Shown one piece after another: positions 7,995 to 57,432 of a DNA stretch of 64,000 nt (positions are counted from its first letter, which is position 1; every line of letters starts with the position of its first letter). A model generated the notes under the pieces. The model saw only the letters and a list, made by a program, of their open reading frames with translations. It was not told the DNA's origin and searched no databases. The DNA is from Hyphochytrium catenoides. Taxonomy: Eukaryota; Protista; Hyphochytriomycota. A program made the position numbers and the translations under genes. Location: NCBI GenBank assembly GCA_900088475.1, contig FLMG01002942.1, positions 1 to 64,000 of the forward strand, read 5' to 3'.

Positions 7995-9432
7995 ATGGAT
8001 CCCCTGTGTCCCCTTGGGCCGTAGTCCCTCCGAGTCCCCCTCCTACTTATCTGAGAAAGAGGCACCTGAAGGACAGCTGCAACTCCAGCAGCGGGAGCAC
8101 GAATGACGACGAAGAGGCGGACCTGGCGGAGGAGGAAGAAGCCAAGCGTCAGAGGCGTTGTCAACACAATGATAGAGAGCGCAGGAGAGTCAGGGACATC
8201 CAAGAGGCTTTCAGGGGTCTGAGAACAGCCCTTGAAGAACTGGGATATTGCTACCACCGTAGCCAGCTTTCTATCTTGAAGAAGACAATGGAGATGGTCC
8301 AAGATATGCGACGCTCTATTGAGCTAAAAGAACGAGGAGGGCCTTGTCAAAGCGGCCAGCCACCTCCGCCAAGAAAGATCGAAGGCAACGAGAACGAGAA
8401 GGGGAATCACCAAGGACTTACCTCGGAGCGCTTGCGTTCTGTTGCTGCCAACGTCGAGTACCAAGGTGCAGAGGGCTGAAAAGAACGGTAGGTTCTTCCA
8501 ATTTTTCTCCCTTGCTGTCTCCTAATAATCTCGCTCCCGTGGCTGACAGGTGGATCGGCTCCGAAGAAGGCAGCAGTCCTCAGCGGTAGATGTGAGCTTT
8601 CAGTGATACCTCCTTTGGCAGAAGAGAAGGAGAATGGGCCCATCACGATGTCGGAAGGTGCCCCGCCCCGTCTTCTTCCTTAACCAGAGAAGCGGAAGTA
8701 ACTATTCTGCCTCTTCCTCCTAGGAAACATATCACCCCATTATTGTCGAACATAGTTCAAGGAATTACCGAGAAGGGGGAGATTGGGTCTTGTCTCAGGC
8801 TTAGTGGTCTAAGTAGTACTATGGCCACAGGATGCGGCAGCAGCACTGCCCCTATAACAACATCGACGCGCCAACAGATGGAGAGTCATCCAAGGACGAT
8901 AAGGGAGGAGAAGAAGAACGAAGAAGAAAAGATCAACAGACTCTTCTAAAGCCCTCCCGTCTTGCTACTGTTGCAAGCCAAAAGATGGCGTACCACGAGG
9001 AACAAAGAAAGGAAAAATAGCAGTGGAAGAAGAAGAGATACAGCAATCAGCACTATCTCTTCTTCTCTCTGTCGCTGACCCGCATTACCCTCTCATTAAC
9101 CCTCTGTCCGAGCTGACTAGTCTGACAGCAGCAGCTTCCCCGGGCCTCTCGTCTTCTGGAGAATGCTTGTGTCTCTTTAGTCAAGACCCCCTAATGAAGG
9201 TTTGCTGTTAGCTAGCGAGGCGGCAGGGCTTGTGCTGCCCAGTCAGTGCTCTATTGGCTTCAAAGCGGGACAGTCCACCCTCCTCTCCCTCTCTCCTTCG
9301 AGGGCATTCCTACCCTGCTCTGACACCAGAGAAGAACTATGTTCACAAGACCTCTTACTAGGCTCCTTGCTCTCTCTCTCTGGTGCGGTCCAAACCGGCA
9401 ACGCTGAGTCAGCCCCTTTTCTGTTGCCCTAA
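7995..9432 (+). pseudogene. bHLH subfamily A copy 1, disrupted
   Basis: bHLH HNDRERRRVRDIQEAFRGLR..GYCYHRSQLSILKKTMEMV. Relative to the paralogs, ATG 7995 is followed by a 1-nt deletion and a second frameshift lies near 8435. The intron 8488-8549 is at the paralog position. Exon 2 homology (ADPHY..LSEL..AAASPG; LPSQ..G.KA) is broken by stops and frameshifts. Confidence 0.8.
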
Positions 9433-9857
9433 AATAAACCACCCTGGGCGGTGGATAGTAATAGGGTTGCTAGAGGAAGCGCCGTCGTCTCCCTGGCTTC
9501 ATTTTTTCTCCTTCCTTTTGTTATAACTTTTCTACATCCTTCTCCTCCGTTCGAGTTTGTTCTCACCGCTCGCCGTCCTTCTCCTCTCCTTTCACCCGCA
9601 TTGTGGCACTCTTGGTTCCTTAGTCTCAGTTTGCTCCTCTCTCTCTTTCGTTCACTGCCTGAGGAGCGACGTACCAGCAAAACAAGAAAGTCTGAGCGAA
9701 TCGCTTGTTTTACCAGCCCTTGGAAGGAGAAGACGTATCATCACTCCTTTCTTTCAATGGGTGAACCCTAAGACCTGCGCTCATAAAATAAGTTCTCTTT
9801 TTTTCTCACAACGATGCTCTACTATACCTCTTTTCTATATCTCTTGGTTGTCCCAAT

Positions 9858-10445
9858 TGTAGGTCTCCTTTCTACCTGGCCCGCTCCAGCTGGCTCTATC
9901 AGTCTTTGTTAGCCCTACTAGTACAAGGGATGGTGGTGGCCAGACTCGTTTGATGTCGCTTAACGAAGTCGAGGGCAGGGAAAGAACTAATTCGTCTCCC
10001 GTCCACCAACCGCCATATGCGCACTGGAGGAGGAATAATGAGGAGGTAGAAGAGCCACATTGGGAGACTGGGGGGAGCACCTGACGCAGCAGGGATATAC
10101 TATGATAAAACGCAGAGAGGGGAGTACTGCGCAACGGTGGGACTCGGCGGACATGTCTGACACCCATCATCATCAAAGAAAGCGATCCCTAGAGGACGGG
10201 AGGCAAAGAAAGAGAGGGAGAAAGAGAAAACGAGACACAAACAGAGAGACAGAGAGAGCGAGAAAGAAAAGAGAGAGAAGAGAGAGAAAGAAGGGGGAAG
10301 AGACAGAATAAGAGAAGGTGCAAGTGGTGAACACACAGAATAGCAACACCAACAGAGAGAGAGCGACGCAAAGAGGGAGAAAATGAAAAGCAAAGCGAAG
10401 GTACGAGTCACCGTTCATTCTTCAATAGCTCTTCTATTCCTAACA
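9858..10445 (+). mobile_element. Possible solo LTR
   Basis: TGTAGG...CCTAACA near-inverted ends, GA-rich interior; no TSD found. Confidence 0.25.
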
Positions 10446-13400
10446 AGTGCTACTAACGGTAACGGGCTTCACCCATAGCGAGCCTAAATCCACACATTCT
10501 CCTCCACTAATAATGGCAGCAGCAGCGACTCATCGGTCGTCGCATGCCGTAGGTTGAGGGGAGCATATAGATCTATGGTGGTATGGAAACTATGATACAG
10601 GAGAGAGAACAGCAGGCAGGTAGAAACTGGTGGGACGATGGAGAAGAGGAGAAGAGAACAGAGTCGTAGCACCAAACGCTTGTTCACCTCCCCGTAAAGC
10701 TCCAATAATTACTCTTCTTGACCCGGGACCTTCTTCCCACCTACGTGACTGGTCCGCTTGCGCCATTTTGGCGTCCTCAGATAGAGTTCCTAGAGCTGTG
10801 TTCCCCCCATCGCTCTCCTGCATGATGTTTGCTACAAGCTTTCAACGGGCCTTTCCTCACTACCTACTTTCCTGTACGTTTCTTCTTTGCTGAGCCTTCG
10901 GTGAATACTCTAGCAACAACCGGAAAGCACCCTTTCCTCGAGTCTCGACCCTCAGATCATGATAATGCAATACAACCTGCAAGTGACGACTTTGGATGAC
11001 TGACCTTGCAAATTATCGGTTCATCTGGGTGAAGCTCCTTTCCGAAATGACGATTTATCATCCTACGCAGGAGCGCTAGCGACTTGGTCGTGGCGGCCGA
11101 AAGAGGAGCTGGCAGTCTATAGCCTGATTATTTTTAGAGGGACAGCCCAAGGTGGTGGGTGCTAACCAAAGACCCAGAGCGTAGAAACAGGTAACGAAGA
11201 AGAAGGAAATGGTAGCACGCACACCAGCTATAGATCATTTTTCAAGGGCCCTGCTGTACAGCCCACGGCACCCTTTATCCGTCTACTGTGGAGCCCAGAA
11301 GTCGAAGAAGGTAGGTCTACTAAGTCGCACGAGGAAGAAGCCCTACGCCCTCTAACTGTTATCCCGAAAGGCATGCTAGGAGGGAATGACTGTCATGCCA
11401 CCGTTATCACCCCTTCGGTCCCGCTTGCTTGAGCTTCTTGTCTTCTACACAGCGATGCCCCCTGATGGATTGCACATCTCATCAGTCTCTATTGAAGATT
11501 TAGAGGCAAGCCAAAGCGCATGGTAAGCCGTACCTTGGACGAATGTATCCAGCCGTGAGTCCTAATGAAGACCACAAAAAGCTGGCATCAGTGGCACCAG
11601 TGTTGACAATCTTTATCTGTTGCTGATCAACTCTTAGCCGATGTCCCAGCTTCATGGACTAGCTCCCAGCGCTCCGATGCCCGGCATCACTCTTACGTGG
11701 GTGTTTTATAAAAGTGTTTTCAATCAGTGGGGGCAAAGAGAGGCTGACTTGGAAATATGACTGGTGAATTGATTCTCCTTGTTCTCGGTACTTCCATCTC
11801 TTGCACTTTCCAGAACGCAAGGAGGGCGCGTTCCAGAACATGTCCCCATCCTCCTCGAAGGTTCAACATTTAGCGAGAGACGAGCCAGCTGTTTGCGCTT
11901 CGCCAGCATGTCAACATGCACATTTAGTACGACGAGCACCAGCCTTGTCAGCACCTTCACCTGTCTAATAAGTATGGTGGGCCGGAGAGCTCCAAATAAG
12001 AGATCTCTTTGGCCGTATTATTTCTTCCCGTCACCGCATTACACGCTGCCTAACCTACTTCATAAGTGTTTCTAGGAGTGCCGTGGTGTCCCATTACGTT
12101 TATCCCTAACCCTAACCCTTATCACCACTATCAGCTTTTTCCCCCCTACTGCCACCACTTTCCTTTTTATAAAGGTTGCGGGACAGCAGCGTCAGCATCT
12201 TTATGGCCGGAATAATATATCGTAAGGAGCGTGACAGCGGCTCATCAAGGTGGGACACTAGCATGAGAGAAGAGATGAGCACCTTCTTGTTGCAGTCAAG
12301 GGTCTCTGATGGCCAATAAGAAGATGCTGCTGCTGCCTGTGCATCAGCAGCCAATGAACTGTTGGAGAGCGGTAGCAGAATGAAGATTGATGATGACAGA
12401 GCACCACCTCATATCTTTTTTGTGTCAACTCTATCGTAACAAAGAGGAATGCTCTAGGGCTTTGTACTACTACCATGCAGAAAGGGAAAGGAGCGAAGAG
12501 GGATGAGTAGGGGAAATGGCCCAGAGGAGCTAGCGGTGGCTTTCCATCTTTCCGCCGGGGTTAAAGTCCCTTCTGAGTCTGCTGCAACCAGTTCTTGTCA
12601 CAACCAGTCCCCGTAGTAGTTTGGGCACAAAAGGTTGCTTGTTCTCTATTTGGGGCACAATGTACGTGGTTGCCTTTGGTTCTAATGGGTTCTCTAGTCG
12701 TGTGGGGGCATAAGGGAGAGCATTATAAAAGCGTTTTCGGTAGGTCACAATTAATGACTTCGGTCCTGGGGCCTAGTTTCCTGCTTATCTTTTCATGGTA
12801 TGATCTGTAGGTGTCTTTTTTCGTTTCCTATTTTCGGAAGCAGAGAGCAGTTTCGGTGTGGAGGGTGTGTAGGAATCGATACTATCGGCAGTGATGGATG
12901 AAGGGAACACCAGAAGATAGCTGGCTCTTTTCCAGCTCATTATTGTTCTTCTCTCCTCTGACGTCTCCTGTTGTGCCCCAGTTGCCTTCATTTTGAGGTC
13001 GTCGCTCGGTAGTAGTTCTACCTCTTTCTCCTCTTTCTTCTGGCACTGGATCGTCCACATCGCCTTATTAGAACTACCCGCCTCCTCCCCTCCACCTTCA
13101 CTGCCCCTTTCCTTCCTAGAAGCTTTCATTCTAGACCATAATGTATTGCAGTACCATGCAGCAAGGAAGGGGAGAGAAGGAGGAGAGAAGATGAGTACAG
13201 CTGTAATCCTTTTCATAAAAGGTGACGCCACGGATGTTTTTCTGTTGTTCTCCCTCCTCCTGCTTCCCGTACTTTCGACGCAAAAGGTATGCTGGTCCCT
13301 AAGTTCAGGGCAGTATAAGGGATTGCCCAGATGCCAATGAGCACTCGGTCATGTGGCGCTCTCTGAAGCTGTCCCACACAGCTAAATTTTGGCTTTGGAG

Positions 13401-15416
13401 AGAGCTTAGTGGTTCTAAAACGCAGATCGGAGCTTAATATCTTGTTTTAGTATGAGATTATCGGAAATACGGGAAACTTTCGGTAGATCCGGGGACTGGG
13501 TTAGCATGATGAGAAGTGCTTAGAGAACGTGTCACATACCGGCCCTTTCCAAGCTCATTGTTCTGCATCTCTGACTTGGACCCCTGACCGCGTCTCTTCT
13601 CTGTTAAGCATTCCAGTGCCGTATTTGGGACAAGTCTCATTTATCATAGTCAATCAGGGTATCCGACCTGCTTAGGCGGTCTTTATCTAAAATCAGTTAA
13701 AGGTGTGGTGCAAGCTTTGGAGAGTTGACGTGGCAGGAAAGCAGCCTTTTTGTTTTTATAAAAAAATAACTGATAATGAGCCACCATCTCGCCCCCCACC
13801 CGATGTTCAAGCACTTTTAGAACTCCGACTTCTTTTATAGTGGACCCAAAGATTCCATTCTCTTCATGGCCTGAAATGTTCAACGGAGGACATGGAGACA
13901 CATCGGGTTTTATTTTTCAAAGTCTGGGTTTAAGAGAGAGAGAAGAAAAGGGATATAGATCCAGTAGCGACCTCAGGTCTGCTGCTCTTGTACGTGCTCT
14001 CAGGCCACCCTCTGTCCCTTCTAACCAATCCCACTTCCTATACCAACATCTTTGGCCCGAGATGCGACTGCTTGTCGGTCTCTCATCTGGCAACATCATT
14101 ATCTCTCAGTCTGTGGGTTCCTTGGAGCCGAGCCTTCAACCCTTTGAAAGGAATGCAGCAGAAGACTCTTTCTTGAGAAGAAGGTCACGTCGGCACTGAA
14201 GAACCTATCCAACCTGAGTAGTGGGCGACGAGTAAGCAAGCCATGCAAGAACCAATCCTCTATTGATTCTTCCCATTCCTTTCCTCGTTTCTGCTGCTAC
14301 CTGATATTAAGGTTCCGGTTCATCATCATCGTCTGAATGACTGGTGTCTCTTGGTGTTTCTGCTGCCTATAAAGGAGAGATATGGGCCTCTTGCAGGCGG
14401 GCTGGGGCGAGCAGAGCCTCGCGGTACAAAAGTAACCTTGAGATCTGCACCACCACCATCTCGCTCCACGAGGTCAAAGAAGATTGCGAATAGCTTGAAT
14501 AGAAGGACGCCATGCTATGCACACGAGACGACGTACTGTACTGTTGTCGGACAAAATTTAGAATAGCTAGGAAGGAGTTTGGCGGAGGGAGGAGAGACCT
14601 GTGTCTGATGATTCCGGCGCAGGTAGTACCTGATGCTAGATCTTCTCCTCTTCCTCCTTCTCCTTTTGGTCATTTCTTTTCTCTCGCTCTGTGTGTGCCC
14701 ACCCTCATCATGTTCTCTAGCAGAGCAGAGAGGAGAGACTCCTCCCTTTTTGCTCTTTGACGTATATAATAATCCATATCCTTATGTCTATTAAGCAATT
14801 AGTAGCACCAAGAAGTATACCTTGTGACAAGTTAAGCTGCTGCTTGCAGACGAAGAAGGATGTCCTTTGTCTTCTTCCATCTGCTCAGTACAGGTAGTGA
14901 GAATAGTCTTCTGCTGGTCCTCTCACCTTCTCTACCTCTCGCCCTGTTGGTTTCGAGAAAGTTCCACTGTCAGTTAGTATCACACACGACCCGCAAATCC
15001 AGCTCATGCTCCGGCAAGAAGAAGGGCTGGGAGAGGATCTGCCTTGATGGTGAGGCAACGAGAGACAAGAACATGCTGCACCAACTTTCACTGAACTAAC
15101 TGTGGTGTTGCTCTCGCCGCCGCCTGTCACCGCATCCATGATATCTTGTTGATCATAGTAGAGGACGAGCTCATTTTATTCCTTTCGTGGAAGTGCACAA
15201 ACGTCTTCTCTGGCCGCCTCCGCCGCAGGAACCCAATATACATTACCTGTTACGTAAGATGTGTTAGCCATGCATTGGTAGCCAGAAATCTCGTCAGGAC
15301 ACGAGCAGAGCGAAAGGCCAACTCGAGACGAGACCTCAATTCTCTCGTCACATCCTTCAGCAGAACCTCACCTTGCGCTAGGGCAAGAGCAGCGACAACA
15401 ACTAGGAGGGAGAAGG

Positions 15417-16837
15417 ATGGAGACATCCGATTCTGCCTGGGCTCTTTCCTCCTTTCCTCTTCCTAGTTCTTTGAGAAGAAAGAGGCACCTCGTCGATAAC
15501 GGGAGCTGCTCTAGCAGCGGCAGCAATGATGATCAGCCAGAGACGGAGGAGGAAGAAATCAAGAGGCAGAAGCGTTACTTACATAATGACAGAGAACGCA
15601 GGAGGATTAAAGACATCCAAGCGGCCTTCAGCGGTCTGAGAACAATGCTAGAAGAGCTGGGTTATGGCTATCATCGTAGCCAGCTCTTTATTCTCAGAAA
15701 AACAATGGAGATGGTGGAAGAGATGAGAGATTCTATAAAAAGTGACCCTCAACGAATACGACTCTCTCCTCTCAATGGCCCAAAAGCCCGACAGCCAACT
15801 CCGGAGAAGGAAGTGGTGAAAGAAGAAGACAAGAGGACCCAACAAGCGTACGCCTCGGAGACTTCGCCCCTACTGCTGCCAAGAAGAACCAAGATACGGA
15901 AGATGAACGAGAGTATCGGTAAGGCCATATGTTCTTCTTTATCCACCCTCCCCTTCCCGTGCTAAGTAATCTACTCTTCCTCCGCGGCTTAATAGATGGA
16001 CCCATGGTCCAGAAGGCAGTAGTAGGGGATTGTAGAGATGAGGTTTCCAAGATTCCCGTTCTTCGCACAGAAGAACAGAGTGAGAAGGGTTCCGTCGTTA
16101 TTATCCCTGGAGCTGCTTCTCCTTTAACCTGCACCAGGCAGGAGAAGTTAGCTATCCTGTCCCCTAATCATGGGAGACAGATCCCTTCCTTCCCTAACAT
16201 AGGTCAAGCCCCTTCCCAGCAAGAAGAAGGGAGCGTTCAATGTTCTAGTGAGCCTGGCCTACTAGGTAGTATCGTTATCAGCCCACCAGAAGACAGCCAC
16301 TGGGCCAAGCACAAGCAGAAAGAACAAGAAGTAAGGAGAGGAGAAGGTACAGAGGGTTCTTCAACCTCGTCATCCCTTACTACTATCCCAAGCCAAGAAA
16401 AAGAGGCCCAACAAGGAGAAAGAGAAGGAGGACTGAGAGAACAAGAAGAGAAGCAGCAGTTAGCGCTTTCTCTTGTTCTTTCATCCGCTGATCCGCACTA
16501 CTCCCTCACTAACTCTTTGTCGGAGCTGGCCAGTCTGGCAGCAGCTTCTCCAGGATTTGCTCCTCCGCCTGCTTTTATGGCTCCAGCAGGAGGTGTCCAT
16601 CATGAAGGTCTACCGCTGACCAGCGAGACGGCAGGGTTTATGCTTCCCAGTCAGGGCGCTGTTGGCCTAAAAGCAGAAGAGGCCACGCTTTTCTCATTCT
16701 CTGCCTTTCCTACTTACCACCGGAGGATGGAACTAGACTCAAGAGCTCTTCTATGGGGATCATCATGTCTCTCCTTAACTGGAGCGGGGAATGTCACCGG
16801 CAACGACGCCCTGTTATCTCCCTTCGCGCAGCTTTGA
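15417..16837 (+). CDS. bHLH transcription factor, subfamily A copy 2; exons 15417-15918 and 15996-16837, 447 aa
   Basis: HNDRERRRIKDIQAAFSGLR..GYGYHRSQLFILRKTMEMV. A GTAAGG...CTAAG...AATAG intron (15919-15995) joins the two listed ORFs in frame (ESI-D-GPMVQK). Confidence 0.88.
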
Positions 16838-16898
16838 GCACTAACGAGAAAAGTAGTGGGAGAGGTTGATAGGGAAGGTCCTCGCCCCTCCTTCTAAA

Positions 16899-16947
16899 TG
16901 TCTGTGCACCTAGAAAGAACTGTCTGTGCACCTAGAAAGAACTGTCT
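16899..16947 (+). repeat. Perfect 22-bp tandem duplication in the 3' flank of copy 2
   Basis: tgtctgtgcacctagaaagaac occurs twice; the paralogous site near 22995 has one copy. Confidence 0.9.
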
Positions 16948-18758
16948 TTCCTCTGTTAAGATTGCCCGTTGCATTCTTCTCCTCGCTTCACGGTAATGTG
17001 TCTCTTCTTTCCTCTGTTCCCTGTGTACGATGGTGGATGTTTTCATTCATTCTCCATTCTTCACCTCTCTTTGATAGTAGTATATTATAGGCAAGGCCAC
17101 TGTTACCACCGTCTTGTCGTCGCTTCAAAAGAGGGAATCGGCCGAGGGGAAACAAACAGAGGATAGGGCGAGAAACAGAGGAGCAACAGGTTGACAACTC
17201 CAAAGTGGTCCCTTGCTACGATGGCAAGCCAGCAACGACATACAGCAAATACAGCGAAGAAGGACGTTCGGGAGAAGAGGCACAGGCGAGACCTCTTCCT
17301 CTTGCTTTCCCTTCCTCTCCTGGTTGGTGACCGCATTACTCTCTTTTTTACCCTCTGCCCATAGCGGCAGGTCTAGATGCAGCTTCGACGGCGGGCTCCC
17401 CTTGCTAAGTGTTATAATAATGCCATCATATATGAAGGCGCCTTTGCTTTTTTTTCAGTGGACAGTAGGGGGATTAGGGGTGCCGGCCGATGTGCTGGAG
17501 GCATTAGAGGAGGACACTTCATGCTCCTCCGTCCTCCTCCTCTTCCCCTTCTCCGAGGACGTTCATATCCTCCTCCCCTTCTTTTTATTCGACAGAGAAG
17601 AACTACGTCCAGAAAGACACACTTTTCGTGTCTCTCGGTGTTTCTCATGCGAAGAAGACAAAAAAGTTGTAACAGGCAGCACCACAACGTCTCCGTTTTA
17701 TGCTTTTATTATTCCTAGGTGACTAACTAAGTCCTTAATACAACCTCCCTTTGCCCTTCAGTTCCCTTATATGCCCTCTCTGCAGCCCTCTTGGCGCAAT
17801 GTCTGTCTCTCTCTCTTTCTCCCTGCTCTCTCTCTCCTCTCTCTTCTTACGTTTGTGTGCTTCTAGTTCTTTCTTCCGTTTTTGCCTTGTAGTTAGAGAG
17901 CAGCGTTCCTTTGCGGTGGGGCTTAACAGAGGTCATAGGATAATAAAGGAGAGGGGAAGGCTAGCAGTGTGAACGGGTTGCAGCTTCTCTTTCTCCCTCC
18001 TTATATCTTCGTTCAGAGCTGGTATGCGGAAAAAAAGAGATTTGACACTTTTGGAAATGAAGAAGGGGATTAAGATCGCAAGGTATTCGGGTGAGGGTGG
18101 GCCTGGCCACCCACTATCGGAGCTCAATATAAATCTGGAGAAAGAGGTGGTGGCTGAAGAACTGAGGGCTGCCAAACTGATTCTTGACACTTCTTCCCAA
18201 CACAAGCTTGCCCATTCTTTCCAAGAGGCCAAAAAAGTGCTCGCCGCTCATTATTATGCGAGCGCCTCAGCACTGATTCTCTTCGTCCATGGAGTTACGA
18301 CTGTCCAGGTCTCTCTGTCTTTCTGCCAACCTATACGAGTATTCTCTCCGTCCAATGTTTCTTCACCTCCCAGGAGGGAAGAACAACAGAAATCCCAGTT
18401 CTCTGTACTCACTATGATCTCCCCTTTTATCATCATTATCACCTTGTTGTTCTTTTGAGCACCTCTTCGCGGACTACTCGTACTTATAGCCGATGCTAGT
18501 TCCATTCTACCTTCTCATTACCAGCTCATCGCCTTGAGTGAGGTCCCATGTGGTCTGAGGAGAGATCAATAACACAAGAAGAGGACGGCTAACAAAGGAA
18601 AGTATCAGTCTCATGACCTTATACGAACATTAGCTGGGTGGGTGGGGAGCAGCCGCTGGTCGTCATGCCAAGGGTTAGTACTTTATCTTGCGGGCTCACG
18701 GGAAGGAAGAGTAGGGATGATCCAGAGAGGAATGTGATATTATGTACCATCATCAAAC

Positions 18759-21700
18759 GTATTGCATTAGCATGCAGCAAGGAAGGGGAGAGAGGAGAGA
18801 GGAGGAAAGAAAGATGTAGGTGACACAACGGATTTTTTACCTTCTTCCCGTTGTTCTCCTTCCTCCAGCTTCCGTTACTTTCGACACAAAAGGTATGCTG
18901 GTCCCTAAGTTCAGGACAGTCTAAGGGATTGCAGATGCCAATGAGCACTCGGTCATGTGGCGCTCTCTGAAGCTGTTCCATACAGCTAAATTTTGGCTTT
19001 AGAGAGAGCTTAGTGGTTCTAAGGCCTTAAAATGCAGATTCAATATCTTGTTTTAGTATGAGATTATCGAAAATACGGGAAACTTTCGGTAGATGCGGGG
19101 ACTGGGTTGGCATGATGACAAGTGCTTAGAGAACGTGTCACATACCGGCCCTTTCCAAGCTCATTGTTCTGCATCTCTGACTTCGACCCCTTGACCGCGT
19201 CTTCTCTGTTAAGCATTCCAGTGCCGTATTTGGGACAAGTCTCATTTATCACAGTCAATCAGGGTATCCGACCTGCTTAGGCGGTCTTTATCTAAAATCA
19301 GTTAAGGTAGTGGTCCCATAGAGAGTTGACGTGGCAGGAAAGCAGCCTTTTTGTTAACTGATAATGAGCCACCATTCGCCCCCCATGATGTTCAAGCACT
19401 TTAGGACTCCTACAGGTACTTCTTTTATGGTGAGCCCAAAGATTCCATTCTCTTCATGGCCTGTAATTTTCATCCTGAAACATTGACACAGGTAGCTATT
19501 GCCTTCTATTTTACTCAGTCAGCAGGGTACGTTGGAAAAAAAGAAGAAGAAAACGGGAGATAGATCCAGTAGCGACCTCAGGTCTGCTGCTCTTGTACGT
19601 GCTCTCAGGCCATATCCTAAGGGGAACCCTCTGTCCTTCTAAACCAATCCCTCTTCCTATACCAACATCTTTCTTCCTCCTCCACCACCACTCAGCATCA
19701 GCGTGAGATGCTACTGCTTGTCGGTCTCCGATCTGGCAACATTACGAGTAGTACCTCTCAGTCAGTAGGTCCCTTGATGCCTCCAACCCTTTGAAAGCAA
19801 TAATGCAGCAGAAGACTCTTTCTTGAGAAGAAGAAGGTCACGTCGGCACTGAAGAGCCTGTCTAACCAGAGTAGTGGACGACGAGTAAGCAGGCCATGCA
19901 ACCAACAACGTTAGAGGACCAATCCGCCAATCCTCTATTGATTCTTCCCATTCCTTTCCTCGTTTTCTGCTGCTAGCTAAGGTTCCGGTTCATCATCATC
20001 CTCTGAATGATGAGGAGTGGTGTCTCCTGGTGTCTGATCTCCAGCCTTTCCAATGTTTCTGCTGCCTATAAAGAAGAGATATGGCCTCTTGCAGGCGGGC
20101 TGGGGAGTGCAGAGCCTCGCGGTACAAAAGTAACCTGGAGATCTGCACCACCACTACCTCGCTCCACGAAGTCCGTCAAAGAAGACTGCGAATAGCTTGA
20201 AAAGAAGGACGCCATGCTATGCACACGAGACGACGTACTGTACTGTTGTCGGACAAAATTTAGAATAGCTAGGTAGGAGTTTGGCGGAGGAAGGAGAGAA
20301 TGGAGTTTGCTATGGACAAGCACCAAGGAGGAGAAGAATAATGGTAGCGCGTGCCGTGGTGGATGCGAGAAAGCGATGGCCAGCAGCAGAGAGGAGATGG
20401 TGCTATATCTCCCTTCATAGTGCTCTTCTTGCGTTAGGCCTGTGAAGCGGGTTCGTTCCGGCGTGGGTGTGTATCGGTTGGCAAGCAGATTCTCCTTCCT
20501 TCGTGCACCTTCTTCTCTTCTAATGGTCTGAGTTAGACAAAGACGTCTGCCTGTGCACTTTCAAGAGAAGGATGGGTGAGCTCCTCGACTCTTCAGGGTA
20601 ACTGTTCTGCGCCGGCCCGCCGCTCCATTTGTGTTAGTGATGATGGCGGCCGTGAACTCTGACCTCGATCTTCAAGATTCAGGACCGTTTAACGATGGTC
20701 TTAGGTAATCTCCCGCGCTTTTTACTGGCATTCTGTTTCTGATGATTCCGGCGCAGGTAGTACCTGATACCAGATCTTCCCCTCTTCCTCTCCTTCCTCC
20801 TTCTCCTTTTGGTCACGTGTTTTCTCTCGCTCTGTGTGTGCCCACCCTCATCATGTCTCTAGCAGAGCAGAGAGGAGAGACCTTTTTAACCTATTATTTT
20901 AAGCAATTACTAGCACCACGAAGTATACCTCGTGACAAGTCAACCTGCTGCTTGCAGACGAAGAAGGATGTCCTTTGTCTTCTTCCATCTGCTCATTAGT
21001 GAGAATAGTGTTCTGCTGGTCCTCTCACCTTCTCTACTTACCTCCCGTCCTGTTGGTTTCGAGAAAGTTCCACTTTCAGTTAGTATCACACCCGACCCGC
21101 AAATCCAGCTCATGCTCGGAAAGAAGAAGGGCTGGGAGAGGATCTGTCTTGATGGTTTGGCAACAAGAGACAAGCAGATGCTGCACCAACCTTCACTGAA
21201 CTAACTGTGGTGTTGCTCTCGCCGCCGCCTGCCACCGCATCCATGATATCTTGTTGATCATAGTAGAGGACGGGCTCATTTTATTCCTTTCCTGAAAGTG
21301 CACAAACGTCTTCTCTGGCCGCCGCCTCCGCTCGAACCCAATATACATTTCCTGTTACGTAAAATGTGTTAGCCATTGTTAGCCAAAAATCTCGTCACGA
21401 CACCAGCAGAGCGAACGACCAACCTGAGACCAGACCTCAATTCTCTCGTTACATCCTTCAGCACAACCTCACATTGCGCTAGCGCAGGAGCGCAGCGACA
21501 AGATAGGAGGGAGAAGAATGGAGACATCCAATTCTGCCTGGGCTATTTCCTCCTTTCCTCTTTCTAGTTCTTTGAGTAGAAAGAGGCATCTCGATAGCGG
21601 GAGCTGCTCCAGCAGCGGCAGTAATGAGGATCAGCCAGAGACGGAAGAGGAAGAAATCAGGAGGCAGAAGCGTTACTTGCACAATGACAGAGAGCGCAGG

Positions 21701-23148
21701 AGGATTAAAGACATCCAAGCGGCCTTCAGCAGTCTGAGGACACTGCTAGAAGAGCTGGGTTATGGCTATCATCGTAGCCAGCTCTCTATTCTCAGAAAAA
21801 CAATAGAGATGGTGGAAGAGATGAGAGATTCTATAAAAAGTGACCCACAACGAACACGACTCTCTCCTTTCCATGGCCCAAAAGCCCGACAGCCAACTCC
21901 GGAGAAGGAAGTGAAAGAAGAAGACAAGAGGACGCAACAAGCATACGCCTCGGAAACTTCGCCCCTACTGCTGCCAGGAAGAACCAAGATACAGAAGATG
22001 AAGGAGAGTATCATTGGTAAGGCCCTATGTTCTTCTTTATCCACCATCCCCTTCCACTGCTAAGTAAGCTACTCTTCTGCGGTCCAATAGATGGACCCAT
22101 GGCCCAGAAGGCAGTAGCAGGTGACTGGGGAAAAGATGAGGTTCCCAAGATTCCCGTTCTTCGCACAGAAGAACAGAGTGAGACGGGTCCCGTCGTTATT
22201 ATCCCTGGAGCTGCTTCTCCTTTAACCTGCACCAGGCAGGAGAAGTTAGCTATCCTGTCCCCTAATCATGGGCGACAGATCCCTTCCTTGCCTGACATAG
22301 CCCAAGTCCCTTCCCAGCAAGAAGAGGGGGATGTTCAATCTTCTAGTGAGGCTGGTCTATTAGGTAGTATCGTTATCAGCTCACCAGAAGACAGCCACTG
22401 GGCCAAGCACAAGCAGAAAGAACAAGAAGTAAGGAGAAGAGGAGAAGGTACAGAGGGTTCTTCAACCTCGTCGTCCCTTACTACTATCCCAAGCCAAGAA
22501 AAAGAGGTCCAACAAGGAGAAAGAGAAGGAGAACTGGGAGACCAAGCAGAGAAGCAGCAGTTAGCGCTTTCTCTTCTTCTCTCATCCGCTGATCCGCACT
22601 ACTCCCTCACTAACTCTTTGTCGGAGCTGGCCAGTCTGGCAGCAGCTTCTCCAGGATTTGCTCCTCCGCCTGCTTTTATGGCTCCAGCAGGAGGTGTCCA
22701 TCATGAAGGTCTACCGCTGACCAGCGAGACGGCGGGGTTTATGCTTCCCAGTCAGGGCGTTGTTGGCCTTAAAGCAGGGGAGGCCACCCTTTTCTCTTTC
22801 TCTGCCTTTCCTTCTTACCGAAGGATGGAACTAGACTCAAGAGCTCTTCTATGGGGATCATCATGTCTCTCGTTAGCTGGAGCGGGGAATGTCACCGGCA
22901 ACGACGCCCTGTTATCTCCCTTCGCGCAGCTTTGAGCACTAAGGAGGAAAATAGTAGGAGAGGTTGATAGGGAAGGTCGTCGGTCCTCCTAAATGTCTGT
23001 GCACGTAGAAAGAAATGTCTCTCCTCTGTTAAGAAGGCCGGTTGCACTCTTCTCCTCGTATCACGGTAATGTGTCTCTTCTTTCCTCTCTTCCCTGTCTG
23101 CGATGGTGGAAGTTTTCATTGGTTTTCTCCATTCTTCACCTCTCTTTG
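18759..23148 (+). repeat. Segmental duplication unit B (upstream region plus bHLH copy 3)
   Basis: Matches 13143-17073, has ~440 extra bp at about 20300-20735, and ends at the Copia-like junction. Confidence 0.93.
21518..22935 (+). CDS. bHLH transcription factor, subfamily A copy 3; exons 21518-22016 and 22091-22935, 447 aa
   Basis: Same bHLH as copy 2; the GT-AG intron 22017-22090 restores the frame (ESII-D-GPMAQK). Confidence 0.88.
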
Positions 23149-24269: not shown

Positions 24270-24858
24270 TGTACGGGTGGTGAGGCCTCCAGTGAGGTTA
24301 CATCATTGACACCGCCTCCTTTGGGTCATCATGCCCTCCTAGGCAGAGCTCTTTATGAATAATGAAGAAGAAAGATAGGAAAAGCTCAACAACGCTGGAC
24401 GGGTAGCCAGCCACAAGGGAGAGACAGAGAACAGAGCTATGACAGTCACAGAGAACAGAAAAAATAGCAAGGAGTAATCAAGGCAGGGCGAGAGAGAGAG
24501 AACGAGACAGAGAGAGAGTGTGTGTGTGTGTGTGAGGGAACAAGAGAGTAAGAGAGAGTGTGTGTGTGAGAGATAGTGTGTGAGAGAGGGTGTGTATGAG
24601 AGAGAGTGTGTATGAGAGAGAGTGTGTGTGAGAGAGAGTGTGTGTGTGTGTGAGAGAGAGAGGAGAGGAGAGTGAGAGAGAGAGAGGAGCAGGAAAGGGA
24701 GTGGTGGCGGACGTAGTGTCCGACCCCCGTCTTTCCCTCCTTCAGAGCAGGGTTTTTATACAACTTTTGTCCGTTCTTTTGAGTATAAGGGACAAGCCCA
24801 AGATATGACCGTATCAATATTAGGAGAGTTTGCTTCTAAAGGACATATCGTTCTTACA
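24270..24858. mobile_element. LTR-like segment interrupting the Copia pol, with a (GA)n/(GT)n tract at about 24490-24690
   Basis: TGTA...TACA ends; begins where Copia coding similarity stops; no TSD. Confidence 0.35.

Positions 24859-25065: not shown

Positions 25066-25110
<45 letters not shown>
24870..25110. repeat. (CT)n-rich microsatellite
   Basis: Directly visible; further CT tracts at about 25348-25384 and 26205-26270. Confidence 0.95.
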
Positions 25111-26207: not shown

Positions 26208-26238
<31 letters not shown>

Positions 26239-28909
26239 TGTTCTCGCTCTCTCTCTATCTCTCACTCTCCCGCTCTTCAATCTCCGTTACTCTTTAGGGC
26301 CTTTGGTCTCTCCCTCTCTTTCCTCTTCTTTCTGTCTCCGTCTTGTTTAGGACATCTAGTCTCCATGATGTCCTCTATTCTTTCTCTTGATCAATGTCCG
26401 TGCCTGGCGAAGGAGCTGGTTTCGCTGCTTCAAGGTTGTTTTCTGCAAGCTTTCCCCCTATTGTGGACCAGCCCGTGCTCTCTCATTGTCTCTATTTCTG
26501 TTCTTTCTCTGTCTTTGGATCATTGATGCCTTACTTGCTTTCCTCCTACTCCCCTACAGCGCTGTTTGAGACACCTGAAGGTGCATGGATACGTGTGGCT
26601 GACGTTGACTACAAGCTCAGTCCCGGCACGACCTCCATCGAAAGTGGAAGAGGGAGAGAGAGAGAACGCTGGTTTCTTCTCTACGAGTGCTCTCCCCTCA
26701 ACAGATCGAGAGAGAAGTTCTTGATTAAGCTGTTTCCTAATATTCTGAAGCCTAGGGCCATGACGGAGCATCAGGCCCTTCGTTCTCTCTTGGCTTCTCC
26801 TTCCTCGCTCTCTCCGCACATTATGGAGGAGATCGCATTTGATGGAGAGGTTCGGATTGTGAGGAGAGAAGCGAAGAGGGAAGGAGAGGAACAGGGCTTT
26901 CTTCTCCTCCCTTGCGCGGCCATGGTTTTAGAGAAAGCCGGAAGCACCCTCTTGCAGATGGTTGGCGACGCGATGGATCTAAGCAGCCAGAGCACCGTGG
27001 CTATGATCACAGGTGGGACACAAGACGAAGAGAGAGAGAGAGTATCAGAGAAAAATGATAGAACAATGGGTGGATAGTGCTAGTAGAGAAGGTGAGGCTT
27101 TGATGTGGGACTCTTCTCATAGAAAGAGGGACAACGACGAGAAAGGGTAAGGAGGACGATAGAACTAGGACGGGACAGAACACATCCTTCTCTCCTCCTA
27201 AAGTCACCTGCTCAGCTGCATCTGACTCCCAAATGCTGGTCTACCCGCACTTTATTTTTTGTCTCTTCTCTCCCTGGCAATTCTTTTAAGCTCACTCTTC
27301 TCTGGATCTTCTCTTCTTTTCCTTCAATGCTAAATGTTTTCGTTGCCCATCTACAGAGAAGGTTGTTGAGTGTCTGGCACATCTACATCTTCGAGGGTTT
27401 ATCTATGGAGATCTACGGTTAGACTCTATCGTCAACGTCGGACAGTTCCCGCCCCAGCTCAAATTGATGGGCTTCGAGGGTGCCAAGAAAGAGAGAACGC
27501 TGTTCTCTTCTGAGTGTGTCTCACCCGAGTATTGCCCTCCGGAGATGGCCGTCCATTTGACCAAGAAGAAGGGCGGTGATAGGGCGCCAGAAGGAGTGAA
27601 AGCGCATTCAAGCTATGACATCTGGTGCCTCGGCGTCCTTATCCTTAAAATGTATGCAAGGGGCCAGCCGTTGGAGGAGTTTCGCAATCTAGAGGAGACG
27701 GGAGCAGGGAGGAGACTGACGACAGATAATATCTGTCTCTCCTCGTCACCAGCAATCATCGCAGCTCTTGCTTCTCCCTCTTTCTCCTTTCAAAGGAGCA
27801 TTAGAAAGTTTGTTAGGCACGAGCCTATGCAAGATCTAGTCTCTCTTTGCCTTCAACGCAACCCTCAGAGCCGCCCCTCTGCCCGCTCTGTTATCTCTCT
27901 TCTCTCCCGCATCCGCTTCCAGAGTGGAGAGGCTGCGGATAACAGGAGAACCCGAAGAAAGAAGGCGAGAGAAGATATCGACCCTGAAGAGGAAGAGGAA
28001 ACGAGAAATAGATTGAAAGAGCTTCGCGGACAATCTCTGCCTTCTCTATGGATACTTCTTCCTGAGTCCAGGCCAAAAGAAGGTGGAGGCTGGGGCAGGA
28101 GACTGAAAAAGTCGAAAGTGTTTGACCAAGAGTTTTCTCTGGAGTTCGTCTGTGAAGGGCATTCTGGGGATATTCCTTGTGCATCAAGGCAGCCTCTTTC
28201 TCTTTCTTCTCTCTCTCTCGCGTCATCTGGTTCGTCTCTCTCCTCCTCATTGTCCTCATTGGCCCCTGACCCCTTGGAGCTTCTTCGTGGCGCTTGGCAA
28301 GTCTTCCACAGCACACTGCTGCTTATCAGGGCTGCGGGGATTGTGGAAGACGAGTCTGCGCTCTCTCTCCTTGGCGCATTAGGAAAAAGAGAGCCTGTCG
28401 GGAACCAGCAACATATGTATGAGACCCTCCTTTCTTCTCTCTCTTTCTCATCTCTCCCTCCTCCCAGTGAGGCTGCCGTGAGGCTGCAGAAAGAGCTGGA
28501 GGTCTTCACTCTTTTGGAGCTGGAAGGAACGAGAAAGAGACAAACGACAGCAAGCAGGGAAGGTATGGGAGAGCTCATAGGTGAGGCTCTTGGCTTGATG
28601 AATGCGATGCTCGCAGAAGATAGACGAAAGGAACTTCTGTCACTTCTCTCTTCCCTCTTTCCTTCTAATGATTGGACGAAAAGCGCAACGTTGGGCGGTC
28701 TCCGTCCGGTGAGGGTGAAAGCCTCTCAACGGCTCAACGAGGAAACAGAGATACGCTGGGTTTGCGCTAATCATGCGAGAGACTCTACTTGGTATGAAAG
28801 AGGGAGTTTGAGAGAGAACGATAACTACTCTTCAGATGAGGAAGGAGAAGAAGACGAAGACACTGAAGACGCAGAGTCTGAGCGACCCATGGGCTCTTCT
28901 TACTATTAG
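25650..28909 (+). CDS. Single-pass membrane pseudokinase with C-terminal Cys/His domain; exons 25650-26187, 26351-26434, 26560-27012, 27357-28909 (875 aa; true start may be upstream)
   Basis: TM LLVVILPVAAGVPLLLLLSWCLW followed by a basic stretch. Kinase motifs: FLIK, TEH, MVLEKA, HLHLRGFIYGDLRLDS, LKLMGFE, SPEYCPPE, YDIWCLG, CLQRNPQSRPSA. Three phase-1 GT-AG introns keep one frame. Confidence 0.8.
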
Positions 28910-44806: not shown

Positions 44807-45664
44807 CTAATCCGTGGGTAACGGCAGCAGTAGGAGCTCTAATAGCGAAGCCTGTGGCTTCTCTACGGCTTGTTGGCTAGTGCAGAGGGTGCCGCCAAAA
44901 GCGTATAACGTAGTCGGTAATGAAACGGCGCTGTTTGCCGAGCTCCTTCCTCGGTGGTGGTCAGGTTCCATGTCCTTGTCTCGTTGCCATGGCAGACAGC
45001 TTTTCACGGTTTGCTTGACGACGCTGGCGGCATCCAAATCTACGGCTTCTCCAACTAGGGCGGCGGGAGGATGATCAATTGGCGAAACCACAAGCGCTGC
45101 TGCTTCACTATCCAGGCGGCGACTAGAAAGTTGGGGCGCTTTTTCCGTCGCAGCAAATCCTAGCATATTACTCTGTTGTCGTTCGTCCTCTGCCGTCAGC
45201 GGCAGGAAGAATTCGTCCCCTGCTGCACACCCTAATGAACTTTCATAGAGGGAAGAAGAAGAAGAGGAAGGCGAGCAGCAAATAACCTGTTCCTCTGATG
45301 GCTCCGCAGCTGCAAACTGGGCGGCGCAGCCACCGCTTCTCCATTTGCTCCCCCTGGAAAGTAAATCTTGACTCAAGTCGTGGTAGTGGTGGTGGTAGTT
45401 GACTTTGTTGCTTAACAGCCAAGCCTTACTCTGCAGAGAGGCAATGACTTGGGCCATTTCCTGAAGCATTTCAGAGGTCTTGAGGAGGACCGCCAACTGG
45501 CTCCGCTGGTCCCCGTAGCCCATCTCCGCAACTCGAGAACGTAAAATGTCGAAGGCATGGGCAATGCTTCTCATCACTCGCCTCTTCTCCCGTGTGTTAT
45601 GGGCGGTCCGCTTCCTCTGAATATAGTCTGCATCTTGGGGATCCACTGTTCTTTTCCTTGGCAT
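44807..45664 (-). CDS. bHLH transcription factor, subfamily B2, 285 aa from ATG 45664
   Basis: MPRKR..HNTREKRRVMRSIAHAFDILR..GYGDQRSQLAVLLKTSEML. Confidence 0.87.
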   Translation of the reverse strand: MPRKRTVDPQDADYIQRKRTAHNTREKRRVMRSIAHAFDILRSRVAEMGYGDQRSQLAVLLKTSEMLQEMAQVIASLQSKAWLLSNKVNYHHHYHDLSQDLLSRGSKWRSGGCAAQFAAAEPSEEQVICCSPSSSSSSLYESSLGCAAGDEFFLPLTAEDERQQSNMLGFAATEKAPQLSSRRLDSEAAALVVSPIDHPPAALVGEAVDLDAASVVKQTVKSCLPWQRDKDMEPDHHRGRSSANSAVSLPTTLYAFGGTLCTSQQAVEKPQASLLELLLLPLPTD

Positions 45665-49742: not shown

Positions 49743-50384
49743 TCAGAGAGGAAAGAAGTCCTCGGTCGTGTCGGAGCTAAGCTGTGGCAGGGTTCCATCA
49801 TCAACCCGTCCTGCGTCAGTCAATAGCGCAAGACAAGTCATCAACTGTGCATTTGATGACAATTGCTCCTCATCCTCTCCGTAGTATTCAACCTCTGCAC
49901 TAACGGCATCGCAGCTATTGCTACCGCCGTTGCTGCTGCTATCGTCCTCACCACTGCTCCCTGCTGCTTCTTCCTCTTGCTGGCTGCTTAGATGATGCCC
50001 GTACTGGCAACTCATCAAGGTCTCCTCGTACTGCTTGCTCAGGTTGTGCTCATACTGCTGCTCGTTGGTCATGTGATGCAAGGACTGCCAAGAGACTTCT
50101 CGGTGCGCTGCTGCCTCAGATGTGCCAATCGTAGTGGTGGTAGGGATGCTCTGCTGCAGTATTTCTATGGTGTGAGAGAGGTCCTGCACCATATGTACAG
50201 TTTGGGCTAAGACGGCAAGCTGGCTACGTTGATCTCCATAGCCCATCACAGACAACTGCTCTCGCAGAATAGCAAATGCTGCGGCAATTCCTCTGACACG
50301 GCGCTTTTCCCTGTCATTGTGCTTAGAGCGCTTCCTCTGGACGTACTCCGGATCCCCTCTATTCACACTGCGCTTTCGGGCCAT
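49743..50384 (-). CDS. bHLH transcription factor, subfamily B3, 213 aa from ATG 50384 (an in-frame upstream ATG exists at 50549)
   Basis: MARKR..HNDREKRRVRGIAAAFAILR..GYGDQRSQLAVLAQTVHMV; start chosen by alignment with the paralogs. Confidence 0.87.
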   Translation of the reverse strand: MARKRSVNRGDPEYVQRKRSKHNDREKRRVRGIAAAFAILREQLSVMGYGDQRSQLAVLAQTVHMVQDLSHTIEILQQSIPTTTTIGTSEAAAHREVSWQSLHHMTNEQQYEHNLSKQYEETLMSCQYGHHLSSQQEEEAAGSSGEDDSSSNGGSNSCDAVSAEVEYYGEDEEQLSSNAQLMTCLALLTDAGRVDDGTLPQLSSDTTEDFFPL

Positions 50385-54365: not shown

Positions 54366-54457
54366 CGTTCTCTCTCTCTCTCTCTCTCTCACTCTGACTC
54401 CATCCCTCTCTCTCTCTCTTTCGTTCTCTCTCTCTTCTCTCTCTCTTTCTCTCTCCT

Positions 54458-54500
<43 letters not shown>

Positions 54501-54750
54501 CCCTCCCTCTCTGACTCTTTCTCTCTCTCTGACTGCCTCGCTCTCTTTCTCTCTTTCTCTCTCCCTCTTTCTCTCTCCTCCAGCTCTCTCTCTCTCTCTA
54601 CCTCTCTTTCTCCCTCTTTCTCTCTCCTGCCCCTCTCCCTATCTCTCTCTCCCCGTTCCCCCTCTCTATCTCTCACTGTCTCCTCCCCCCCACTTCTCTC
54701 TCTCTCCCTCTGCCTCCACTTTTTTCTCACTCTTCCCTCTCGCCCTTTTC
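54366..54750. repeat. (CT)n-rich polypyrimidine tract
   Basis: Directly visible. Confidence 0.95.
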
Positions 54751-56436
54751 TCATCAGCAGTCATGGGTCATGGCTGCTGCTTCTCTTTTTTCCCAGTCAT
54801 TCCACGCTTGTACCTTCTTTGTCTTCTTCCTCAACACGTGCTTCTTTCTTCCTCCTCTCCTGCTGCTTGCGTCGCTGTCGTCTCCAGATCGTTTTCCCTT
54901 CTTCCCGCTCCCGGCCTCGCTCAGAAGGTCATGACTCTTCTATCTTCCTTCGTGGGCCTAGGACGGAGCGAGCGGTGATCTCATTAGTACGCCACCGCTC
55001 TTCTTTGTTGCGTCACTCAACGTGTTGTCTCAATGACTAGACGCCTTTATTTCTCCCACAATCATGCCGGTCATTCGCCGGTCTTGCTTGGTAAACTAGT
55101 GTCCATCGTCCTTCACCACTTCCGTTCTTATTGCTGCTTAATATGCGTGAAGGTGGCCGAGCCGATGATGCCGCTTCCTGGTGGCAATCCTTGTACCCTG
55201 TCAGGCTTGGCGAACCACGCCAACAAATTGTCTTCTCCTATTTGCCGCGCCAGCAGCGGCAGATGAATTTTTTCCGGCTGCCGGCCGGCCTACTGTTTAC
55301 TTACTCGTTCTCATCCTTCTCCCCTTAGTCCGAAGTGAAAGCAGCAGATGTGAGTAAGAAGCAGCAGCGAGTACCCGCAGATAAAATTCATTCTAGATGC
55401 TGCTGGGACGAACCGGCGAAGCAAGCTATTACTCCCTATCAAGCAGCTCACCCACCTCTTATTGCTCAGCAGCGAGGGCAGAGACGGGACAGATAGATGC
55501 CTGGGAGGAAGAGGTAATGGGAAGGAGCATGATCCATCCTCCATCCCCTTGGTAATGGTAGAGCAAACTCCTCACGACGGTAATGCATCGTGCTAGACGG
55601 AAAGCAGTGGCTTACCGACGAGATACATTGTTCTTCTTCATCACTATTTACCGAGAACCACTAGTATGACAGGCGCTAACAAATGGATTGATTGGCCCTA
55701 TCAAGGAAGAAAGGCTCAGTGCATCACTGCCTTCAGTAAACGCATTCATCCTGTTCTTCCCTTGTTATTCTGTTCAGCCTGCCAGCACTCCTGACGTAGC
55801 ATGCTGTCCATATTATGCGAACAACAGCAGCCAATGGCAGTTAGCAGTTTTCTGCAGCGGCCTATTATTAGTCTTCTCCTTCTGGTCAACAATAAAGAGA
55901 AGATTCAAGGCCATGATAATGGGCATGAGATCTGCTGTCTTTTCGCAGATATGGCCGACGGCACACATCAAGCCTCGTGGCGGGAAGGAGTTGACTCATA
56001 AGAGGCGCGTCTCGCTATAATAATAGGACAGTGGCGGTGTATTCGACTACTCGGCAGCACTGACTCTATTTCCAGCAGTTAGAGGAATTAGAGAAGAGGA
56101 TGATATTTCTTTCAAAGGTAAGGACAAGCAGTTCTAATGTTTGAGAGTTAGTTAGATTGTCTCAAAGTGCAGGCAGCGACAGCCTTTGTGTTGCCAGCCA
56201 CTCCCTACTACCGATCGTATTGACAGGTGACTACGCGCCCTTCAGACCTTGGTTTCTCTAGATGACAGTCATCTCCTTAGTCATCTGTGCTGCTATGGGT
56301 ATATTAGGATGTTTGACACCAGTGCGTGGCTTGTGCTTGTCCTCAATAGAGAGGTGGTGGTGGTGCTCCTTGCTTAAGCTGAAGCTGTGGCTAGTTGCCC
56401 GTAGCGAGCTCTCCTCCTGACATACCTCGACTCTTA

Positions 56437-57432
56437 CTACTGCGCTGTAAGCTGAAGAAGAAGTCTATTAAAGAGTTCCACGTCATAGCAGAGCGCTGGA
56501 TGAGGGAGGAGAGGAGAGAGAGGATCTCTCATCCCTCCTCCGCAGCGGAGGAAGTCTGCCATACCCTCAGAAGACACGCCAACGTCAAGACGGGTATCAC
56601 TAGTCGATGGGAAGGACGCGGTAGGAACAATCCAGCTTAGAGTTGAAGGCAAGGCACTGAAGCTGCTCATCCCGCTATAGGAGAGCCCAACCACCTTTTC
56701 TTCCTCAGCCGGCGTCATAGGGTACATTCTACTCCCGTCCGATGCTGGAATCAACGTCACTTCAGACTTATCTTCTTCGGTAATGCTTTCAAAGGCTGCA
56801 GATGTCATCCGACCTTGGTCACACTGGCTAGCAGTGACACAGACAGCGTGCCCCTGGAGGTTTCCAGACAGGGAGCCGTCTGACACCTCCAGCTCATGGT
56901 CTTCGGCAGATAGGCAGCAGAGGACACAACGCACAGCGGACTGATTGGTCGTCAAAGGGGCTTGCCAATCCTCGTCTGAGCATGATGCCGCAGCGGCGTC
57001 TACTAGGCTTTGATTCCTTAGAGTGGCACTCAAATCGTCTGAAGAAGGAGGAGGATGGCAGACGATATCTTCGGAAGGGAGAGGCAACATCCATGTAGGA
57101 GAAGACGCATCGTGGCAAGAAGGAGAGACGGAAACTCTTTGCTCTCTACTTCCCCTGGCTATCTCCTCAGACCCTCTGGATTGTTCAACGAGTTCTCTCT
57201 GCAGTAAAGTTATACCGTTGTTCATGTCGTGCATCATCTCCAAAGTCTTGGATAGGACTGATAAGTGGCTGCGCTGTCCCCCGTAGCCCATCGCCTCCAC
57301 CTTCTTCTTCAGAATGTCGAATGCTTCCGCAATGCTCTTTACTCTTCTCTTTTCTCTAGAGTTATGCTTCGCACGCTTTCTCTGGATGCAGTCACTGGCG
57401 TCCGGGCTATCAGCTGTCCTTCTCCGAGGCAT
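56437..57432 (-). CDS. bHLH transcription factor, subfamily B4, 331 aa
   Basis: MPRRR..HNSREKRRVKSIAEAFDILK..GYGGQRSHLSVLSKTLEMM. Confidence 0.9.
   Translation of the reverse strand: MPRRRTADSPDASDCIQRKRAKHNSREKRRVKSIAEAFDILKKKVEAMGYGGQRSHLSVLSKTLEMMHDMNNGITLLQRELVEQSRGSEEIARGSREQRVSVSPSCHDASSPTWMLPLPSEDIVCHPPPSSDDLSATLRNQSLVDAAAASCSDEDWQAPLTTNQSAVRCVLCCLSAEDHELEVSDGSLSGNLQGHAVCVTASQCDQGRMTSAAFESITEEDKSEVTLIPASDGSRMYPMTPAEEEKVVGLSYSGMSSFSALPSTLSWIVPTASFPSTSDTRLDVGVSSEGMADFLRCGGGMRDPLSPLLPHPALCYDVELFNRLLLQLTAQ

Follow-up and report, generated by a model that had tools for sequence, protein, structure and literature searches.

Do several related transcription-factor genes that lie side by side work as a complex, or do they merely record a history of duplication? 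This question is raised by the first 64,000 nucleotides (nt) of contig FLMG01002942.1 (GenBank assembly GCA_900088475.1, forward strand) of Hyphochytrium catenoides, a stretch that we will refer to in the following as the window. It encodes seven proteins with a basic helix-loop-helix (bHLH) domain, arranged in two groups that face each other. A sequence-only reading had seen in them a cluster of lineage-specific genes, perhaps an independently evolved transcription-factor complex and an undescribed system. We regard the cluster, with a probability of roughly 80%, as a tandemly expanded, lineage-restricted subfamily of bHLH transcription factors with two branches, A (three genes) and B (four genes). 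The simplest explanation of the clustering itself is repeated local duplication, and the clustering is no evidence of a co-regulated unit.

Seven bHLH genes in two convergent arrays

A family profile, built from the seven domains of the window together with one relative and run against all six reading frames, recovered exactly seven bHLH domains at 121-129 bits, the next score being 6 bits or less. Similarly, 7/7 open reading frames (ORFs) match the Pfam family HLH (PF00010) at 28.9-41.6 bits, above its gathering cut-off of 20.7. In the alignment of the seven domains the residues H, N, R, E, R, R, I, A, F, L, G, Y, R, S, L, L, T, M and I are invariant. Because the domains are found by Pfam as well as by the family profile, and because these columns reproduce the shared motif that had been claimed, the observation of seven bHLH genes is real and far beyond chance. 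Subfamily A occupies the + strand and subfamily B the - strand, and the two arrays converge over ~50 kb, as had been described, with start-to-start spacings of 7.4 and 6.1 kb on the + strand and of 8.4, 4.7 and 7.0 kb on the - strand. The starts given earlier are right for six genes (15417, 21518, 37309, 45664, 50384 and 57432); the ATG at 7995, proposed for the remaining gene (A1), is out of frame with its bHLH ORF. A protein kinase gene (27464-28909) is indeed the single other recognisable cellular gene between the two groups.

Each of the B genes consists of a single ORF on the - strand. These are B1 (36125..37309; 394 amino acids (aa), bHLH at residues 8-80, Pfam HLH 35.4 bits), B2 (44807..45664; 285 aa, ATG at 45664, 28.9 bits and the lowest score of the seven), B3 (49743..50384; 213 aa, ATG at 50384, 36.3 bits) and B4 (56437..57432; 331 aa, 37.8 bits). 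All four begin with M(P/A)R(K/R)R, as does a metagenomic relative, P0001. The position of the B3 start at 50384 is further supported by a second metagenomic sequence, contig L002, which is 94% identical and has a stop codon upstream of MARKR.

Two of the A genes are split by an intron. Exon 1 of A2 (15417..15918, + strand; Pfam HLH 35.1 bits) encodes a serine-rich and acidic N-terminal stretch followed by the bHLH domain, and is bounded by the donor G/GTAAGG at 15919. Removal of the 77-nt intron (15919..15995, GT..AG) joins two ORFs of 182 and 302 aa in frame, and the spliced translation is open through exon 2 (15996..16837), which encodes a low-complexity tail of 280 aa whose C-terminal block is conserved. 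The same structure is found in A3, whose gene model comprises exon 1 with the bHLH domain (21518..22016, + strand; 41.6 bits), a 74-nt GT..AG intron (22017..22090) and exon 2 (22091..22935). A2 and A3 are each a two-exon gene model of 447 aa and not the ORFs of 181-182 aa that are seen before splicing (15417-15965 and 21518-22063, respectively, both on the + strand), the second ORF of 302 aa lying in another frame. Together they represent a recent local duplicate: self-comparison with blastn delimits two tandem units of ~4 kb on the + strand, of which the first (13140..17073) carries A2 and ~2.3 kb of upstream DNA and the second (18756..23148) carries A3, with 80.6% identity upstream and 89.1% in the gene. 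A1, finally, is an open frame with an intact bHLH domain (7865..8479, + strand, domain at ~8132-8344; 37.4 bits), followed on the same strand by a remnant of the subfamily-A C-terminal region (9023..9420), which was located by tblastn of the A3 protein on 7001-11500.

The family and its domain

Relatives of these genes are few. B1, used as query of a word-seeded search through 5.8 billion proteins, retrieved one protein; when 1.84 billion representatives were scanned in full with the domain profile (HMMER), two proteins scored 126-133 bits and the next 59. The next named matches are animal proteins, namely TCF4 (50.7 bits), TCF12, ATOH8, an unnamed protein of an oribatid mite, which we take to be PTF1A-like, and Max. 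The window proteins are themselves absent from a collection of 15 billion proteins, and no family relative was found in a metagenome contig collection (two scans) or among the IMG/VR viral contigs.

A single JGI metagenome sample is the source of both close relatives, whose contigs measure 1.3 and 2.1 kb. One of these contigs, L002, matches 49595-50936 of the window, flanks included, at 94% identity and encodes P0002, which is either an allele or a sister-strain orthologue of B3. A reading of this contig as a spliced transcript was rejected, its 48-nt gap relative to the window being without GT..AG borders. The other contig, L001 (2092 nt), encodes P0001 at 568-1608, a protein of 346 aa that starts with MPRKR and is not encoded in the window. 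Its identity to B1 is 63% in a local BLASTP alignment and 71% over the 73-column domain, and, judged by its sequence, it is a fifth B-type member. Therefore either the family extends beyond the cluster or the cluster runs past the right end of the window.

A phylogeny that includes 58 outgroup domains unites the family in one clade (support 97/89). The B type likewise forms a single clade (98/99), in which B1-B4 are joined by the metagenomic relative, and the division into two subfamilies is borne out. The family stands apart from the sampled animal bHLH matches, and public protein sets lack its proteins, in line with the lineage restriction that had been proposed. On these sequence comparisons we consider it a genuine, previously unrecorded bHLH subfamily that is nearly absent from public protein sets. 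Since its clade is separate from the sampled animal bHLHs, the clustering has arisen independently of the animal achaete-scute and E(spl) complexes, as had likewise been suspected.

An AlphaFold2 model of the domain (predicted local distance difference test, pLDDT, 89) consists of a helix at 2-36, an eight-residue loop and a second helix at 45-69. Among solved structures it comes closest to E47 (template modelling (TM) score 0.78, root mean square deviation 1.6 Å, 33% identity) and Max (TM 0.75), and the best 50 PDB structure matches listed are bHLH proteins, with TM scores of up to 0.80. As modelled, the domain is a canonical bHLH. A comparison of the sequence profile with PDB places Max first (37 bits, E 2e-8), followed by E2A/TCF4 (29 bits). 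The basic region runs into helix 1, and its residues H5, N6, R8, E9, (K/R)10, R11 and R12 are invariant or conservatively replaced in 7/7.

According to published rules, group A bHLH proteins are recognised by 'xRx' at sites 5, 8 and 13, group B proteins by 'BxR', i.e. H or K at site 5 and R at site 13, and group E proteins by P at site 6 (PMC3502508). All seven domains read H/R/(V or I) at sites 5/8/13 and conform to the group A pattern (7/7). They depart from that of group B, for although H5 is present, site 13 is V or I in 7/7. Site 6 is N and not P in every copy, unlike in the Hairy/E(spl) proteins of group E, and the full basic region kept in 7/7 sets the family apart from the Id/Emc proteins of group D, which are HLH proteins without a basic region. 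There is no leucine zipper of the bHLH-Zip type, conservation stopping at TI..LQ ~10 residues past helix 2 in subfamily B and sooner in A. Hairy/E(spl) proteins are further marked by an Orange domain and a WRPW motif at the C-terminus; HLH is the sole significant Pfam domain in the seven ORFs, in which the WRPW motif was not searched for.

Two known groups come closest to the family. The E-proteins of group A (E2A/E47, TCF4, TCF12, daughterless) include E47, which matches best in structure, and also rank among the top sequence matches outside the family. Basic region and helix 1 are alike, reading HN.RE(K/R)RRV(K/R).I..AF in the family and NNARERLRVRDINEAF in TCF4 (P0005), and the R at site 8 and the hydrophobic site 13, which fit 'xRx', are shared with E-proteins. 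Unlike these, however, the family has H at site 5, as in group B, and a unique GY..(Q/H)RS(Q/H)L in the loop and at the start of helix 2. Moreover, no other E-protein domain was found in the family, its genes are short with one or two exons, and it forms its own clade, which is not nested in the E-protein branch. Max, a bHLH-Zip protein of group B, is the best profile match in PDB, and Max-like sequences are nearest in the tree. The H5-N6 pair is common to both, and the alignment extends ~10 residues past helix 2, but the family differs from Max in having V or I and not R at site 13 and in lacking a leucine zipper. Plant bHLHs, by contrast, mostly carry H5-E9-R13; the family is without R13, and no close plant relative occurs among the best 150 matches.

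Probable expansion by duplication and its alternatives

If the cluster is a tandemly expanded transcription-factor subfamily, its proteins would act much as other bHLH factors do. They would enter the nucleus by means of a conserved motif just upstream of the domain, in which RKR precedes the (R/K)(R/K)KR of the basic region by ~12 or more residues and which resembles a bipartite nuclear localisation signal. Helices 1 and 2 would serve in dimerisation and the basic region, which is intact (H5, N6, R8, E9, R12), in binding to E-boxes (CANNTG). Because sites 5/8/13 fit the group A 'xRx' pattern, CAGCTG/CACCTG-type sites appear more likely targets than CACGTG. Activation or partner functions, different from one paralogue to the next, would reside in the low-complexity tails, which evolve fast.

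A number of points weigh against this interpretation. DNA binding and dimerisation are functions that we infer from homology only. The tails of the family proteins contain no Pfam domain; in a protein-atlas search they resemble, weakly and with scores of at most 0.86, only the disordered tails of animal transcription factors. In the tree, which is based on 83 columns and has only top matches as outgroups, the neighbours of the family are Max-like sequences on long branches, and the tree assigns it to none of the animal bHLH groups. The 1.5 kb upstream of each gene show no enrichment of E-boxes (1.3-6.0 per kb versus a window mean of 3.3) and have no 9-mer in common beyond simple repeats. Finally, A1 reads ATA (7988-7990) at the codon that aligns with the start of A2 and A3, and it lacks an in-frame ATG ahead of the domain.

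It is also conceivable, if unlikely, that the cluster is a functional unit whose A and B proteins form obligate or combinatorial heterodimers and whose genes are co-regulated, or expressed at particular stages or in mating, in the manner of achaete-scute or E(spl). The A and B arrays are oriented towards one another, the intergenic spacers are long (4.7-8.4 kb), and the basic region is kept in all seven copies. Furthermore, the hydrophobic residues of the interface (I, A, F, L, L, L, T, M, I) do not differ between A and B, and therefore cross-dimerisation is sterically plausible. Tandem duplication alone, however, explains the arrangement, and the upstream regions offer neither a shared motif nor E-box enrichment to such a unit. 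One or more B-type members, among them P0001, lie outside the window, and therefore the linkage is not exclusive. Auto- or cross-regulation was considered as well and is unsupported by the upstream E-box counts and the 9-mer comparison.

The achaete-scute and E(spl) complexes of Drosophila comprise several paralogous bHLH genes in tandem, with multi-kb spacers, that go back to local duplication. The present cluster is like them in all of these features. It differs in that its genes belong to an unrelated subfamily, with N and not P at site 6, and in that two subfamilies converge. Tandem bHLH expansion is ordinary outside animals too, as in the tandem duplicates that form the Arabidopsis subgroup Ib pairs. 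Indeed, tandem arrays of transcription-factor paralogues are common, and for this reason the interest of the cluster is modest and the label 'undescribed system' was an overstatement. The expansion of a transcription-factor family in tandem is ordinary in itself, and no new mechanism is indicated.

Duplication can also leave pseudogenes behind, and the array might be largely dead and unexpressed, a reading to which we attach a low probability. One case in its favour is A1, in which the start codon is replaced by ATA, stops occur in the middle and the frame changes near the C-terminus. More precisely, the stretch between the bHLH ORF and the C-terminal remnant contains stops when aligned to A3 by tblastn, while the C-terminal motif ALSLLLSVADPHYPLINPLSELTSL.AAASPG is kept (~9023-9151) and the frame change follows after it; at the DNA level, 8961-9298 matches 22477-22808 of A3 at 70% (self-blastn). 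On the preferred reading, too, A1 is probably decaying because its start codon and middle part appear to be lost; it is either recently disabled or spliced differently. The second candidate is B2, the gene with the weakest Pfam score, in whose alignments one extra residue (M) follows site 13 at the junction of basic region and helix 1. Such an insertion into the helix is expected to turn the basic region with respect to the dimer interface, and on the preferred reading, too, B2 may bind DNA poorly because of it.

Against a dead array stand the six of seven ORFs that are intact, the conserved starts, and ratios of nonsynonymous to synonymous substitution (dN/dS) that are well under 1 in every unsaturated comparison. 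For the domain these range from 0.07 to 0.29. A2 and A3 differ with a dN/dS of 0.41 over the whole gene, 0.23 in the bHLH domain and 0.20 in the C-terminal block; B3 and its counterpart on L002, where the ORF is likewise intact, yield 0.18 for the whole gene and 0.07 for the domain. Even A1 yields 0.16-0.18 against A2, which indicates that its domain evolved under constraint. Synonymous sites are saturated in comparisons of the B paralogues with one another and of A with B, while dN of the domain is only 0.28-0.61, and these comparisons show the domain to have been kept through duplications old enough to saturate synonymous sites. By these estimates the bHLH domain is under purifying selection, and six of the seven copies look intact and constrained.

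Variation within the genome points in the same direction. Over 34000-39900, contigs from a DNA sequencing run (X1) fall into two haplotypes that diverge locally by up to ~8% and are each covered at about half depth. Between 37095 and 37349, a segment that includes the B1 domain, the haplotypes are collapsed and show one synonymous difference from the window, the only domain variant of B1 listed. In the B1 tail (36789-37043), by contrast, they differ at 20 positions and by an in-frame 3-nt indel, a divergence of ~8%. As far as can be judged from these contigs, the pattern is that of a constrained DNA-binding domain and free-running tails. Elsewhere in the same contigs, at 35750-35830, a variant has 79 nt replaced by 27 other letters. 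The genome is either that of a strongly heterozygous diploid or that of a hybrid.

This divergence would acquire another meaning if the facing arrays were a compatibility or cell-identity locus, with A and B proteins that work only as particular heterodimers, much as with the homeodomain genes that occur in pairs at the mating loci of basidiomycetes. Balancing selection, and not genome-wide heterozygosity, would then account for a conserved domain beside rapidly diverging tails and for the strong divergence of the haplotypes; the idea is speculative, and we give it little credence. Hardly tenable, finally, is the proposal that a transposon or an integrated virus carries the genes, or that A2/A3 are an assembly artefact with two haplotypes placed in tandem: a transposase-like gene pair does lie at 634-3807, and high heterozygosity of up to ~8% between haplotypes can cause false duplications, but no long direct or inverted repeats flank any copy, the intergenic ORFs are without Pfam match and IMG/VR viral contigs hold no relative, while A2 and A3, at 80.6% identity upstream and 89% in the gene, are more divergent than the haplotypes, and their units are separated by 1.7 kb of unique DNA in a gap-free window sequence that contains no N.

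Taken as a tandem expansion, the cluster adds an unrecorded bHLH subfamily to a genome without public annotation. The 'xRx' pattern, usually taken as a trait of animal group A, occurs here in a family that does not nest with the sampled animal group A, and if the organism is far from animals this convergent example would deserve a line in surveys of transcription-factor evolution. For the organism itself, the seven genes would be a convenient candidate set for life-cycle regulators.

Surroundings of the cluster

The sequence-only reading had named dispersed transposon repeats as a setting in which its proposal would fail, and the cluster lies outside such repeats. A self-comparison of the window shows only the A2/A3 duplication, weak matches of A1, a 480-nt tandem pair and simple repeats of the (TC)n type, i.e. 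local duplication and simple repeats, and no long terminal, direct or inverted repeats flank the bHLH copies. Ten intergenic ORFs gave no Pfam match, and searches of the window for tRNA, rRNA and Rfam families gave no match either. As far as these searches reach, we found no transposon or viral context at the bHLH copies.

The kinase gene between the two bHLH groups (27464..28909, + strand; Pfam Pkinase 34.2 bits) encodes a protein kinase C-lobe with a 330-aa tail and has no close relative in the protein search. It is the last of three consecutive ORFs on the + strand (25650-28909), the first of which is transmembrane-like and serine-rich and the second unannotated. The ORFs at 25650-27077 may be upstream exons of the kinase, and the three together are probably one gene for a membrane-associated kinase.

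Outside the cluster, at 634-3807 on the - strand, a 534-aa ORF with DUF6729 (45.6 bits) lies beside a 515-aa ORF with DNA_pol_A_exo1 (58.9 bits), a 3'-5' exonuclease domain. The pair looks like a transposase-plus-exonuclease element, and 5.8 billion proteins, searched with the part that contains DUF6729, gave no match at E <= 1e-5.

Simple and tandem repeats are scattered between the genes. Imperfect (TC)n tracts of 120-175 copies are found at 24871-25108 and 54369-54711, one in each half of the cluster, and AG/TG-rich microsatellites occur at 24526-24701. Between B3 and B4 (52142-53109) lie tandem units of ~480 nt with 85% identity and overlapping ORFs on both strands.

Traces of the locus were also found in soil. 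A 151-nt read from a soil metagenome is identical to 37167-37317, and two soil metagenome runs (2025) contain short pieces that are identical or nearly so to 37167-37317 and 35826-36010; therefore the organism, or a very close relative, occurs in soil.

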